Below are positions 199 to 25,203 of a DNA stretch of 64,000 bases, piece after piece. A program made the position numbers and the translations under genes. Under the pieces are notes generated by a model that did no database searches, was not told the origin of the DNA, and saw only the letters and a program-made list of their open reading frames with translations. The stretch covers positions 124,001 through 188,000 of IMG/VR virus record IMGVR_UViG_3300005537_000001; one strand, written 5' to 3'. Within the stretch, counting starts at the first letter, position 1. Every line of letters starts with the position of its first letter.

Positions 199-272
199 TC
201 GCCCGTAGCTGAGTGGTTTAGCGAGGAACTCTAAATTCCGGTACGTGGGTTCGATTCCCATCGGGCGATCCA
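199..272 (+). tRNA. Amber suppressor tRNA (anticodon CUA), probably Gln-type body
   Basis: Acceptor TCGCCCG/CGGGCGA, D arm GCT/AGC, anticodon loop CT-CTA-AA in GGAA/TTCC stem, GGTTCGATTCC T arm, T73 then CCA; U1-A72 and U73 as in this phage's tRNA-Gln(CTG). Confidence 0.9.
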
Positions 273-2249: not shown

Positions 2250-2667
2250 AGCACCATCCTTAATGCAGATATCTTATCACTATTGCGAAGATGCTGATGT
2301 GAAATTTGCATTTACGACTCGGGATGAATACGCGACATATCGAGAAGATTGGAAGGCGCGCTACGCCGCTCAAATTCTCAATATTAGACAAGCTAAGGAG
2401 GCCTTTAAGCTAGCGCACCGTAAGTTCTCGATTGAATCCAAAGGTGAAAGATTCTGGCCGATTCTAGCATCTGATGAAGAGATGAGTCGATATAAGGCAC
2501 TGCGTCCGGTGCACGGTGAGATGGAGACTGCTCGATCATCTCTCAAGATGGCTAAGCAGGGAGCAACTGATCTTCTCGCTGAGAGAGGAGATTCAAAGGT
2601 TGAAGCTGGCCGACAGCGCGATCTTCGACTACAGCATAAACCTGTGTACGTTGTAGCAGCATCGTGA
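2173..2667 (+). CDS. hypothetical protein
   Basis: ORF with AGGAG SD. Confidence 0.65.
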   Translation: MWPFSMFKRSPVQEKKIYRCKVCSYEAPSLMQISYHYCEDADVKFAFTTRDEYATYREDWKARYAAQILNIRQAKEAFKLAHRKFSIESKGERFWPILASDEEMSRYKALRPVHGEMETARSSLKMAKQGATDLLAERGDSKVEAGRQRDLRLQHKPVYVVAAS

Positions 2668-2681
2668 TAAAATGATTGAGA

Positions 2682-2759
2682 GTCTCCGAGGCGAAGTCAG
2701 GTAAACGCAGCGACCTCTAAAATCGTTAAGAGTGGGTTCGAAGCCCACCGGAGACGCCA
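2682..2759 (+). tRNA. Second amber suppressor tRNA (anticodon CUA), amino-acid identity unclear
   Basis: Acceptor GTCTCCG/CGGAGAC, D arm GCG/CGC, loop CT-CTA-AA, T arm GTGGG-TTCGAAG-CCCAC, G73 then CCA. Confidence 0.85.
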
Positions 2760-2846
2760 TTCTGATTGTACTTCTCTGATTATACGATATAGAATTTCAT
2801 TCACTGAAAAAGTGATTTGAAATCTTTTGTAACTTAGGAGAACTCG

Positions 2847-3938
2847 ATGAAGACTACGTCAATTTTTGCTGCAGCAATCCTTGCGCTGATCAGCGCAACG
2901 GCGATTGCAAATGGTTACGTTTATCCGGATGGACACGGTGGTTACAAAGATGACCACGGTCAACCTTGTGACCAGTATGGAAATCCCAAGCCAAAACCCA
3001 CCCCAACTCCCCCACCTAAGCCGACCCCCACACCAACGTCAAGCAGCTCTTCATCGAGCTCTTCATCGAGCTCGTCCTCAAGCGCAGCTGGTGGAAATGC
3101 GTCAGCAACCGGTGGCTCTGCGAATCAACAGCAGTCTCAGCAGCTAAACAATAGCGGAAATTCTACCAACGTGAATAGCGTTACCGGTGGAAATTCTTCT
3201 GCTTCTATCGCGTCCGGCGCTGTGAAGGTCAACAACACCGCAAGCGGCGGAGCTGGTGGTTCAGCTACTGGCGGCAATGCAACCGGCGGTTCAGCCTCAA
3301 TCAGCGCTGGTGCAGTGCAGAACACAGTAGCTGGTGGTACAGCGTCGATCGCGGCCGGTGCCGTTCGAAACACCAACACGTTGTCGACTGGAGCATCTAC
3401 GTCGAGCGCAAACAACAATGGAAATCTTTCCAACGTTGGTAATGCTTCAGCTGTAACCGGTGCATCTACGTCTTCCGTTGGTAACATTACGGCGGGTGCT
3501 GGAGCTGGCGCGAACGCTGGTGACAACAATGGCAACGGTTCAAACAACACGGCGATCAACACTACGTACGCCGCGGCAAGAATTCCAGTGAGTACCGCCT
3601 ATTCAGCTGGCCTGACCAGTGGATTGGACACGTGTCTTGGTTCGGCTTCTGGTGGCTTGCAGCTACCATTGGTTGGCGCAACGTTTGGATCAACCAAGAC
3701 GGATGATAATTGCGTCAAGATCAAGCGGACGCACCTGGTAGCGGAATTCAGCATTCCGGCGGGATGCGCGTACATGCTGAAGAACATTCCGGGTGCCAAG
3801 GAAGCCTTTAACGAGGTCGGTGCCGTATGTCTTCCTCCGCCTGCTGTGACAACGGCGCCTCTGCCAACCGATGCGGTGACGCACGATGAGCTGCGTGAAG
3901 TCGAAACTCGCATCACAACCAAGATGGTTCAAAAGTAA
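2847..3938 (+). CDS. Exported low-complexity (Pro-Thr/Ser/Gly/Asn-rich) protein with Cys-rich C-terminal domain
   Basis: Signal peptide MKTTSIFAAAILALISATAIA; PT repeats; poly-Ser. Confidence 0.8.
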   Translation: MKTTSIFAAAILALISATAIANGYVYPDGHGGYKDDHGQPCDQYGNPKPKPTPTPPPKPTPTPTSSSSSSSSSSSSSSSAAGGNASATGGSANQQQSQQLNNSGNSTNVNSVTGGNSSASIASGAVKVNNTASGGAGGSATGGNATGGSASISAGAVQNTVAGGTASIAAGAVRNTNTLSTGASTSSANNNGNLSNVGNASAVTGASTSSVGNITAGAGAGANAGDNNGNGSNNTAINTTYAAARIPVSTAYSAGLTSGLDTCLGSASGGLQLPLVGATFGSTKTDDNCVKIKRTHLVAEFSIPAGCAYMLKNIPGAKEAFNEVGAVCLPPPAVTTAPLPTDAVTHDELREVETRITTKMVQK

Positions 3939-16328: not shown

Positions 16329-16416
16329 CAGGAATTAGCTCATTGGAGATACGAGAGAGCACTCGGTTGCCGAAAGCACCGAGAGGTTGTTGGTTCGATT
16401 CCAACATTCCTGACCA
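16329..16416 (+). ncRNA. tRNA-Pro-like body with anticodon loop replaced by an extended CGAAA-capped hairpin
   Basis: CAGGAAT/ATTCCTG-A-CCA; CTCGG-T-TGC-CGAAA-GCA-CCGAG. Confidence 0.65.
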
Positions 16417-16870: not shown

Positions 16871-16946
16871 GCCGCTTAAGCTAATCTAGTGAAAGCGTGG
16901 GCCTGAAGAGCCCGATAGCTCGGAGCGTAACCGAGAGGCGGCACCA
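16871..16946 (+). tRNA. tRNA-Phe(GAA)
   Basis: TGGGC-CT GAA GA-GCCCG; CCA. Confidence 0.85.
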
Positions 16947-18426: not shown

Positions 18427-19218
18427 ATGTTCTATTATCTCTACAAAATCACGAATAACGTGAATGGAAAAATCTACGTCGGGTATCATAAAACCTCTAA
18501 CATAGATGATGGTTACATGGGATCCGGGAAGATTATCAAGCACGCAATTAAAAAGCACGGCTTAGATAACTTTACAAAAGTCATACTTGAGTATTTTGAG
18601 AATGCAGAAGCTATGTATGCGCGAGAGAAAGAAATTGTAGATGATGATTTTCTAGCTCGACCCGATGTCTATAACCTAAGACGCGGAGGAAACGGTGGGT
18701 TTGATCATATCAATAAAAATCGAACCGCCGAGGAATGGTCTCGATTAGGAAAATTGAGACGAGCAAAATCTAAAGGAAACACAGGTAAAATATTTAGTGT
18801 TGAATGGAAAGCTAATATTAGCAAATCGTTAAAAGGTAGTGATAATTCAGCAGCAGTTGAAGCGGCCAGATCCAAAAAATCTAACCATAAACGAAAACTT
18901 ACGATGAGAAAACGTAAGCATCAACAAGGTGAAAATAATTCCAATTTTGGAAAAATTTGGATAACTGATGGAATAAAAGCTGTCAAAATTAGAAAAGATC
19001 AGATACATGAATATCTTGAACGTGGATATATGTTGGGTAGAACAATTAAAATTCCAAAAATAAAACACATTACTAAAGCTGAACTCTACAATGATATTCA
19101 ACCTAAATGCAGAAATCCAAAATGTAATAACAGCTTGTCGCTTATGCAATTTGTCAAAAATATCAAATCGTGTTGTAAAGCATGCGCTAATTCAACACGT
19201 TATTCGGGGATCGTCTAA
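18427..19218 (+). mobile_element. GIY-YIG homing endonuclease (Seg-like) inserted in the tRNA array
   Basis: YLYKITNNVNGKIYVG..GYMGSG..YNL; AT-rich; stop overlaps tRNA-Gln. Confidence 0.9.
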
Positions 19219-19285: not shown

Positions 19286-19379
19286 GCCGAGGTAGCTCAG
19301 AGCTGGTCAAAACCCAGCGCCGGTAGAGCGGGTGCCCAACAGCACCGCGTCGTTGGTTCGAATCCAACCCGAGGCGCCA
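19286..19379 (+). ncRNA. tRNA-like RNA: D-loop hairpin insert, 6-nt anticodon loop, GA/GA mismatches in acceptor stem
   Basis: GCCGAGG/CCGAGGC-G-CCA; GCTGG..CCAGC insert; GGTGC-CCAACA-GCACC. Confidence 0.65.
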
Positions 19380-19386
19380 AGTTTAT

Positions 19387-19462
19387 TCACCGATAGTTTA
19401 ACTGGCAAAACCTTCGTCTCTGAAACGAAAGAGTCCTGGTTCGATCCCAGGTCGGTGATCCA
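19387..19462 (+). tRNA. tRNA-Gln(CTG)
   Basis: TTCGT-CT CTG AA-ACGAA; CCA. Confidence 0.9.
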
Positions 19463-19468
19463 AATTAT

Positions 19469-19544
19469 GCCCTCGTAGCCTAAAGGATAGGTGCTACGCT
19501 TCGAACGTAGAAAGATGCGGGTTCGAGTCCTGCCGAGGGTACCA
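19469..19544 (+). tRNA. tRNA-Arg(TCG)
   Basis: CTACG-CT TCG AA-CGTAG; CCA. Confidence 0.9.
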
Positions 19545-19551
19545 CCAAAAT

Positions 19552-19651
19552 GCCGAAGTAGCTTAGAGTGGTGCGCAAAATAAATCCACGTCGGTAGAGC
19601 GTCCACCCGGAAACGTGGAAGACGATGGTTCGAATCCATTCTGAGGCACCA
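19552..19651 (+). ncRNA. tRNA-like RNA paralogous to 19286-19379 (D-loop insert, 8-nt anticodon loop)
   Basis: GCCGAAG/CTGAGGC-A-CCA; GTGG..CCAC insert; TCCAC-CCGGAAAC-GTGGA. Confidence 0.65.
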
Positions 19652-25100: not shown

Positions 25101-25203
25101 AGAGATGTCGTATAATGGTATTACCCCGGTCTCCTAAGCACTTTCCTAAAGAGAGTTTTTAGGAAAACCGATGACGGGAGTTCGATTCTCTCCATCTCTG
25201 CCA
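25101..25203 (+). tRNA. tRNA-Trp-like gene with a 29-nt insertion in the anticodon loop
   Basis: AGAGATG/CATCTCT-G-CCA; removing 25135-25163 gives CCGGT-CT CCA AA-ACCGA. Confidence 0.7.

Follow-up and report, generated by a model that had tools for sequence, protein, structure and literature searches.

Diverged five-armed tRNA-like genes in a phage tRNA array and their relatives in other phages

A 64,000-nucleotide (nt) stretch of a phage genome from a soil metagenome (IMG/VR record IMGVR_UViG_3300005537_000001; the whole stretch is hereafter the window) contains, within an array of transfer RNA (tRNA) genes, two tRNA-like genes whose D loop carries an additional stem-loop. The two genes, here called A and B, are very probably diverged paralogues in a phage class of five-armed, tRNA-derived RNAs, a reading based on sequence, predicted folds and covariation. 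The class itself was probably derived from tRNA-Phe. That its members serve as tRNA mimics rather than as routine decoders is a more tentative proposal, to which we give somewhat less than an even chance. The window corresponds to bases 124001–188000 of the 368,054-bp virus record, which has direct terminal repeats at its ends.

Structure of the two five-armed genes

The features of A and B are listed below in window coordinates.

19286..19379, + strand: copy A, five-armed tRNA-like gene, 94 nt including the encoded CCA; Rfam tRNA score 30.3 bits
19302..19318, + strand: extra arm of A, in the D loop following A14-G15-A16, GCTGG-TCAAAAC-CCAGC; -7.3 kcal/mol when folded by itself
19289..19290, + strand: G4/A5 of A, opposite A69/G68 (19372, 19371), tandem G.A/A.G in the context 5'-CGAG-3'
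19336..19341, + strand: anticodon loop of A, CCAACA, 6 nt, on the 5-bp stem GGTGC/GCACC; no U33 and no readable anticodon
19552..19651, + strand: copy B, five-armed tRNA-like gene, 100 nt including the encoded CCA; Rfam tRNA score 35.8 bits
19568..19589, + strand: extra arm of B, placed in the D loop as in A, GTGG-TGCGCAAAATAAAT-CCAC
19555..19556, + strand: G4/A5 of B, opposite A69/G68 (19644, 19643), tandem G.A/A.G
19607..19614, + strand: anticodon loop of B, CCGGAAAC, 8 nt; GAA (the Phe anticodon) followed by A37; no U33

Divided into its structural elements, A reads GCCGAGG-TA-GCTC-AGA-[GCTGG-TCAAAAC-CCAGC]-GCCGGTA-GAGC-G-GGTGC-CCAACA-GCACC-GCGTC-GTTGG-TTCGAAT-CCAAC-CCGAGGC-G-CCA and B reads GCCGAAG-TA-GCTT-AGA-[GTGG-TGCGCAAAATAAAT-CCAC]-GTCGGTA-GAGC-G-TCCAC-CCGGAAAC-GTGGA-AGAC-GATGG-TTCGAAT-CCATT-CTGAGGC-A-CCA. 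The letters agree with the first-pass annotation of this DNA, which had described two copies that start with GCCGA and end with GAGGC-N-CCA, carry D-loop hairpins of different sequence and retained pairing, and have anticodon loops of 6 nt (A) and 8 nt (B). Its description of pairs 4-5 as G.A/A.G in both copies was likewise read from the sequence and is matched by the non-standard flags of cmscan.

Both genes pass the curated gathering threshold of the Rfam tRNA family RF00005 (29 bits) narrowly, over the full model (1-71) and with local E-values of 2e-4 for A and 6e-6 for B. Neither is called by ARAGORN, including when introns are allowed. At E-values up to 1 only RF00005 matches the two genes, the transfer-messenger RNA (tmRNA) and Y RNA models giving no match, and no ribozyme or known RNA family was found in the inserts. 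Each copy lies between canonical tRNAs encoded on the same strand: A begins 7 nt past tRNA-Gln(UUG) and ends 7 nt ahead of tRNA-Gln(CUG), and B begins 7 nt past tRNA-Arg(UCG) and ends 4 nt ahead of tRNA-Arg(GCG).

The body of a tRNA is retained in both. All elbow and core nucleotides are present (U8, A14, G18G19, T54-T55-C56 and A58), as are the T loop TTCGAAT, the G15/C48 pair, the D stem and the encoded CCA. The acceptor and T arms have the 7/5 arrangement and the variable loop is 4–5 nt long (4 nt in B). The D loop is where the architecture departs: at 27 nt in A and 32 nt in B, compared with about 7–11 nt in tRNA, it holds in both copies a hairpin placed between AG(A) and CGGTAGAGC, and cmscan assigns an insert of 24 nt to A and of 29 nt to B. 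No second copy of either hairpin was found elsewhere in the genome, and a mobile-hairpin reading was rejected as both hairpins are unique within it. An antisense reading was also rejected: neither the D-hairpin loops nor the anticodon-arm loops have a complementary sequence in the phage genome.

In the acceptor stem, exactly pairs 4-69 and 5-68 are marked as non-standard by cmscan in A and in B and the other five pairs are standard; the adjacent pair 6-67 is A-U in B and G-C in A. Tandem mismatches at pairs 4-5 were not observed among the ARAGORN-called tRNAs of the genome, where the scattered mismatches in a few rows reflect a register slip in the parse at genes with an unencoded CCA. A kink-turn reading of the G.A pairs was dismissed, as by inspection no 3-nt bulge lies beside them. 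For the anticodon loop of B a closed form, G-[GAAA]-C with 2 nt bulged, is possible.

Comparison of the two copies revealed six double compensatory changes, at pair 6-67, at four of the five anticodon-stem pairs and at pair 50-64. Together with the unchanged tertiary nucleotides these argue for selection on a tRNA-like fold in two diverged copies, and not for chance or decay. The minimum-energy fold from RNAfold is the five-armed cloverleaf for A and not for B, and the fold z-scores of both are weak (-0.8), a common value for tRNAs.

Relatives in phage and cellular sequences

Relatives were sought with IUPAC pattern scans, used in place of a covariance model and run on viral, metagenome and genome collections. 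The patterns fix the D-arm sequence, so that members with other D arms are under-sampled. The pattern applied to IMG/VR (TAGCTYAG, a 16-46-nt insert, GGTAGAGC and a T arm) matched at least 120 viral contigs or loci. Cases in which a tRNA fragment precedes a whole tRNA, an artefact of tandem fragments, were filtered out, leaving at least 58 distinct D-loop-hairpin tRNA-like genes besides A and B. We propose to group these as a five-armed class with the D arm TAGCTYAG...GGTAGAGC; A and B share its stem-loop, at least 4 bp long and placed between A14-R15-N16 and G18G19, and its intact T arm. An identical A/B pair was found on a second IMG/VR contig (L005) and close relatives of A and B are present in other metagenomes. 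Homologues, on which the first-pass annotation had made the existence of a class depend, thus occur in other phages and in metagenomes.

Two large families stand out. The first and largest, fam1 (23 sequences), has the acceptor GGTATTR and the hairpin GGGAGA-TTTA-TCTTCC; in the second, fam2 (17 sequences), the hairpin is AACTC-TTCG-GGGTT and the acceptor, GGTTG(A/T)GG, contains a bulged nucleotide in every sequence (17 of 17). A third, smaller group lies near A and B. For fam1 (n = 23) as well as for fam2 (n = 17) the consensus fold from RNAalifold was a cloverleaf whose D loop contains a stem-loop, and the hairpin covaries in both families through double compensatory changes, seen for instance in 7 of 17 sequences at one fam2 pair. 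As the capping loops are generic (TTCG, TTTA), it is the arm itself that appears conserved and not a sequence in it. Scans with the D arms GGGAGAGC or TAGTTCAG/GGTAGAAC gave ten loci, eight of which were tandem-fragment artefacts, and since other D arms yield almost nothing else the insert seems confined to one D-arm lineage. Most of the related genes were misfolded by ARAGORN. BLAST of cultured-phage records with A and B and with fam1 and fam2 representatives returned no five-armed homologue, and none is present in Sinorhizobium phage Phosso.

Anticodon loops vary widely within the class. Among the matches listed, to which the following counts refer, loop sizes range from 3 to 10 nt; GAA is found in the anticodon-loop region of 39 of 58 genes, and only 13 of 58 have a 7-nt loop with U33. 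The remaining loops are of 3-6 or 8-10 nt and include closed GNRA-type caps (GTGA, GAAA, CGAAA). The fam1 loop can close to C-[GAAA]-G; canonical loops, TTGAAAA or CTGAAAA, occur in part of this family, and fam2 keeps T-G-A-A with a single variant, TGGAA, in L028. In the ten closest sequences (A, B, L255, L257, L260, L108, two genes in L002, L079 and L072) the bodies are alike and the anticodon stems covary, and the loops are almost all different: CCAACA, CCGGAAAC, CTAAACC, CTAAGGA, AGAAG, CTTAAACT, CTGGTAA (twice), AGGG and AAGA. In eight of these ten the acceptor/T helix is irregular, through a tandem G.A, through a bulged 5' strand or through an additional C where the T stem meets the acceptor.

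The tandem G.A itself is found in A and B only, the other relatives being bulged, carrying an extra C or being regular, and its earlier interpretation as a class feature was not sustained. A single pair distinguishes the acceptor strands of the two copies, so common descent by itself could account for the persistence of the G.A. Similarly, loops of 6 and 8 nt are not conserved sizes given the 3-10 nt spanned by the relatives. The earlier proposal of a distinct RNA class under selection therefore stands in part: the L005 pair, the metagenome relatives, the 58 or more genes and the covarying hairpin speak for the class; the tandem G.A and the pair of loop sizes do not characterize it.

Several features connect the class to tRNA-Phe. 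The loop of the tRNA-Phe of Sinorhizobium phage Phosso is CTGAAAC, from which that of B, CCGGAAAC, differs only by C-G in place of U33, and A and B are also like the Phosso tRNA in G26, the variable loop GCGTC and the T arm. In L255 and L257, two metagenomic relatives, the discriminator is A73 and the acceptor is GCCCAGG/CCTGGGC, which we take to resemble that of alphaproteobacterial tRNA-Phe. B combines GAA in its 8-nt loop with A73. On account of the likeness to Phosso, of A73 in L255 and L257 and of the prevalence of GAA, B looks like a remodelled tRNA-Phe. A has no GAA and, with its discriminator G73 and the loop CCAACA, is without any readable identity. In the large-array phages L002, L079, L034, L047, L106 and L108 a canonical tRNA-Phe(GAA) is present besides the five-armed gene.

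The same pattern was run on 185,579 cellular genomes, where 17 of the matches listed pass the tandem-fragment filter. Two of these (L213, L224) are unconvincing tRNA folds and 11 come from archaeal metagenome-assembled genomes (MAGs), nearly all with canonical 7-nt anticodon loops, on account of which they are probably D-loop introns. The few bacterial matches lie on MAG contigs of 7 to 57 kb and may represent prophage or mis-binned phage DNA. D-loop-hairpin genes in a MAG of a candidate phyla radiation (CPR) bacterium (L217) and in two Clostridia MAGs (L133, L138) have anticodon arms closed by 3-4-nt loops (GAAA, GCC, CGG).

The surroundings of the two large families were also recorded. The 3' domain of GOLLD RNA (285-320 bits) lies 0.53-1.04 kb downstream of the fam1 gene, on the same strand, at nine of nine loci: L017 (2005-2095 with 2622-3029), L066, L022, L012, L117, L010, L082, L111 and L055. 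A tmRNA was detected at six of these nine loci, and roughly every second fam1 locus has a gene for SmpB close to the tRNA-like gene. Genes of fam1 and fam2 both follow the same conserved open reading frame (ORF) of 84 amino acids (aa). The shared neighbour proteins, including the one encoded by this ORF, were discounted as reflecting phage relatedness and have no counterpart in the window.

Function and alternative readings

Routine decoding by the class is doubted on several grounds. Loops of 7 nt with U33 are scarce (13 of the 58 listed genes) and many loops have only 3-5 nt. Among the closest relatives the loops diverge and the stems covary, the opposite of how isoacceptors evolve. In the large-array phages the five-armed gene is additional to a canonical tRNA-Phe(GAA); the present genome, too, has a Phe(GAA) of its own (window 16871-16946), as well as other tRNA-like genes with a closed or extended anticodon arm (window 16329-16416 and 25101-25203, genome 107788 and 109626). 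Finally, the acceptor/T helix, the surface used by EF-Tu, is irregular in eight of the ten closest relatives.

Under the mimicry proposal A and B would be transcribed along with the array, excised by RNase P and 3' nucleases, and folded into an L shape from which the extra arm would project at the outer corner of the elbow. In this form they would mimic tRNA and occupy or titrate a factor that recognises the acceptor, the T arm, the elbow or the CCA. A candidate target is a host anti-phage enzyme directed at tRNA, and an alternative role would be that of a charged acceptor excluded from the ribosome. Defences directed at tRNA, and phage tRNA counter-measures, are established (PMC10264068, PMC11555353, PMC13056530). 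The defence nuclease Cas12a3 clamps the acceptor stem, T arm and CCA of tRNA (PMC12851939); other defences cut anticodon arms, and tRNA-Phe is among the reported bacterial Schlafen targets (PMC13056530). With G34-A35-A36 and A73, B may still be a substrate of phenylalanyl-tRNA synthetase (PheRS). A private Phe system was considered and rejected, as the phage encodes no PheRS, L/F-transferase or FemAB.

Several observations weigh against mimicry. The Phe loops of fam2 and of part of fam1 are canonical, so that a conserved anticodon, and possibly decoding, can go together with a fifth arm, and conservation of GAA suits decoding as well as recognition by PheRS. Triplet decoding through a natural 8-nt loop is known from yeast mitochondrial tRNA-Thr (PMC7609411). 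The tandem G.A, private to A and B, could have been inherited without selection. Beyond what phage relatedness explains, no co-occurrence of a protein gene with the class was seen, and in whole-body similarity to typed tRNAs Asn, Thr and Phe score alike for A and B. In its fullest form the proposal describes a widespread class of tRNA-Phe-derived five-armed RNAs with a loop freed from decoding, acting as decoys or inhibitors of tRNA-targeting immunity or as Phe acceptors off the ribosome, with the D-loop arm and the irregular acceptor as functional handles and A and B as a duplicated, diverging pair; as a whole this picture is rather doubtful.

In the main rival reading A and B are functional but hardened tRNAs, with B reading Phe codons through GAA in its 8-nt loop; the arm, the acceptor and the altered 5' side of the anticodon loop would deter host tRNA nucleases and would leave acceptance by PheRS and the ribosome intact. 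We consider this unlikely; the following observations speak for it. In fam2 U33-G34-A35-A36 is near-invariant alongside the fifth arm and the bulged acceptor (17 of 17), and some fam1 members have the canonical loops TTGAAAA or CTGAAAA. The extra nucleotide of B and of fam1 lies directly 5' of G34, the cut site of several anticodon nucleases, and an 8-nt loop permits triplet decoding (PMC7609411): the yeast mitochondrial tRNA-Thr resembles B in having its extra nucleotide 5' of the anticodon, but its body is otherwise normal, and A has 6 nt and the relatives 3-10. Phage tRNAs are known to escape nucleases by changes in the anticodon loop, and these too are phage-encoded and located in arrays (PMC10264068, PMC11555353); their changes however are point changes in 7-nt decoder loops, whereas A and B differ in loop size, in the added arm and in the irregular acceptor. 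Against this reading, the 6-nt loop of A offers no plausible anticodon, loops of 3-5 nt are found in many class members, and A and B both lack U33. The loops of the closest relatives differ, unlike those of isoacceptors, and canonical tRNA-Phe genes occur in the same arrays as the five-armed gene.

Less probable again is that the tRNA bodies are processing or scaffold elements, serving as RNase P and 3'-nuclease punctuation or as stabilisers, with the function residing in the hairpin payload or in a neighbouring RNA. The position of fam1 genes 0.53-1.04 kb upstream of a same-strand GOLLD RNA at nine of nine loci would fit, as would the long hairpins that replace the anticodon loop in other tRNA-like genes of this phage, and tRNAs inside or beside GOLLD RNA have been reported (bioRxiv 10.1101/2024.12.08.627333; PMC6582537; PMC5737381). 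A D-loop hairpin is not mentioned in the GOLLD-tRNA literature searched, and the likeness to GOLLD-associated tRNAs is limited to fam1, which is distant from A and B. The present genome has neither GOLLD (RF02032) nor ROOL, and neither is found near the closest relatives of A and B. Moreover, the ordinary flanking tRNAs need no extra punctuation, the hairpin loops are unconserved in sequence and often generic tetraloops, and the phage genome holds no complementary target for the loops.

That A and B are intron-containing tRNA genes, the D-loop hairpin being a small intron whose removal gives an ordinary D loop as in archaea, is very unlikely. Without the insert the D loop would be an ordinary one of 7 nt, AGCGGTA, the same pattern retrieves mainly archaeal D-loop-insert tRNAs with canonical anticodon loops from cellular genomes, and anticodon-loop inserts occur in other tRNA-like genes of the phage. 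The archaeal genes resemble A and B in the length and the D-loop position of the insert. Archaeal D-loop introns, however, form a bulge-helix-bulge motif and their hosts have a splicing endonuclease; in A and B no such motif is seen by inspection, the stem being continuous with single strands of 3 nt and 7 nt that flank its base on one side instead of being staggered across a 4-bp helix, and the phage genome has no match to PF01974 (tRNA-intron endonuclease) or PF01139 (RtcB), although a bacterial host could have RtcB. The host is bacterial as judged from the permuted tmRNA described below. The anticodon loop and acceptor would stay aberrant after removal, in contrast to the canonical 7-nt loops of the archaeal genes. 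The hairpin, finally, covaries and in the large families is capped by stable tetraloops such as TTCG, which indicates a structure kept in the RNA.

Equally little weight is given to the view that A and B are decaying duplicates, that is, pseudogenes of array tRNAs with insertions and damaged loops. Their scores are barely above the Rfam threshold, the acceptor mismatches could be unrepaired damage, and other degenerate copies exist in the array, for example at genome positions 117940-118014 and 144432-144504. Yet the six compensatory double changes keep all stems paired, the nucleotides of tertiary interactions and the CCA are all intact, the insert is at the identical position in both copies and still paired, and the architecture recurs and covaries in dozens of unrelated phages.

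Least probable is programmed recoding of phage genes by frameshift tRNAs, with B taken to decode a quadruplet such as UUCC (+1) and A to favour -1 or doublet reading: engineered or mutant tRNAs with 8-nt loops can shift frame, but only the loop sizes of A and B point this way (8 nt fits for B only), the relatives' loops of 3-10 nt have no 6/8 pattern, U33 is absent, and the standard code leaves about 90% of the genome in open frames of at least 100 codons.

Array setting, known RNAs and significance

The genome has 53 matches to the Rfam tRNA model, every one on the + strand between 104.8 and 149.2 kb, of which 45 are called by ARAGORN; nearly all array tRNAs encode CCA. Around A and B lie genes for a GIY-YIG homing endonuclease, a peptide deformylase and proteins with unknown functions. 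The GIY-YIG/NUMOD3 homing-endonuclease ORF is located within the tRNA array (window 18427-19218, +), and its final 15 nt overlap the start of tRNA-Gln(UUG) at 19204. A search for orthologous arrays using a neighbouring protein as query returned the same phage only.

A permuted (two-piece) tmRNA (RF04321, 75 bits) is encoded at genome positions 90274-90555 (L249:1528-1809), which suggests that the host is a bacterium from a group with two-piece tmRNA. A further match, at genome positions 68829-69197 (L263) and within an open frame of 377 aa, is to a CCA-adding enzyme (PF01743, 67 bits). Two tRNAs with the amber-reading anticodon CUA are present at window 199-272 and 2682-2759 (+). Amber recoding, which these two tRNAs had brought into consideration, was rejected: the standard code reads the genome well, with about 90% covered by frames open for at least 100 codons, TAG is the stop of 63 of 335 long frames, and no genome-wide sign of recoding was seen. 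Table 11 was therefore applied throughout.

Another tRNA-like gene of the window is a probable third member of the phenomenon:

16329..16416, + strand: tRNA-like gene with a 15-nt D loop; Rfam tRNA score 50.6 bits; missed by ARAGORN

The anticodon arm forms one long closed hairpin, CUCGG-U-UGC-CGAAA-GCA-CCGAG, and the fold z-score of the gene is -3.6. Further unusual genes were observed in the array. ARAGORN also misses a tRNA-Arg(CCU)-like gene (window 25101-25203, +, 45.2 bits) with a 29-nt insert after the anticodon, which pairs with the anticodon loop to give one hairpin of about 17 bp without a bulge-helix-bulge motif, and a tRNA-Phe(GAA) (window 16871-16946, +, 40 bits) with the canonical loop CTGAAGA, a D loop without G18G19 and the T loop AGCGTAA rather than TTCRANY. 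Two tRNA-like genes at genome positions 107788-107913 and 109626-109751 (L247, L252) have the 5' side of the anticodon loop extended by inserts of about 50 nt, of which one ends in TTGAAAA (Phe-like) and the other in CCAAA (Trp-like); the inserts have no Rfam match. A near-identical tRNA-Leu-like pair at genome positions 110919-111001 and 111111-111196 (L252), with the anticodons CAA and UAA, has D loops of 15 nt and lacks a long variable arm, features that are unusual for bacterial tRNA-Leu.

Among known RNAs, A and B share with canonical bacterial and phage tRNA, especially tRNA-Phe(GAA), the acceptor with CCA, the core, the T arm, the variable loop and the placement in an array; they differ in the 17-22-nt stem-loop of the D loop, the tandem G.A, the 6- or 8-nt anticodon loop without U33 and the barely passing score. 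Non-decoding tRNA mimics include the tRNA-like domain of tmRNA, the Y RNA YrlA and the non-proteinogenic tRNA-Gly of cell-wall synthesis. The likeness to these lies in a tRNA shape put to another use and in acceptor/T features that would lower the use of EF-Tu. A and B differ from them in that they are complete cloverleaves with both the 5' and the 3' end in the acceptor and have no Rfam match to tmRNA or Y RNA, and the phage has no Fem-type protein or L/F-transferase. Unlike tRNA-Sec and allo-tRNA, A and B have no 8/5, 9/4 or 9/3 arms and no long variable arm. A stem-loop in the D loop of a phage or bacterial tRNA is described nowhere in the literature searched, a review of non-canonical tRNAs (PMC7609411) included, and we rate the architecture and the probable use of these tRNA-derived five-armed phage RNAs as uncatalogued so far.

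The purpose of phage tRNAs is still debated between codon supply and the countering of host defences that destroy tRNA. A recurrent five-armed RNA that does not decode would, if the mimicry proposal is true, add a third kind of player, namely tRNA mimicry by phages of bacteria. It would also mean that a complete additional helix can be accommodated at the tRNA elbow, a point of relevance to tRNA engineering. The link between fam1 and GOLLD RNA provides a new entry to the function of the latter. The class is probably hidden in the phage tRNA counts and 'pseudo-tRNA' calls of metagenomic catalogues.

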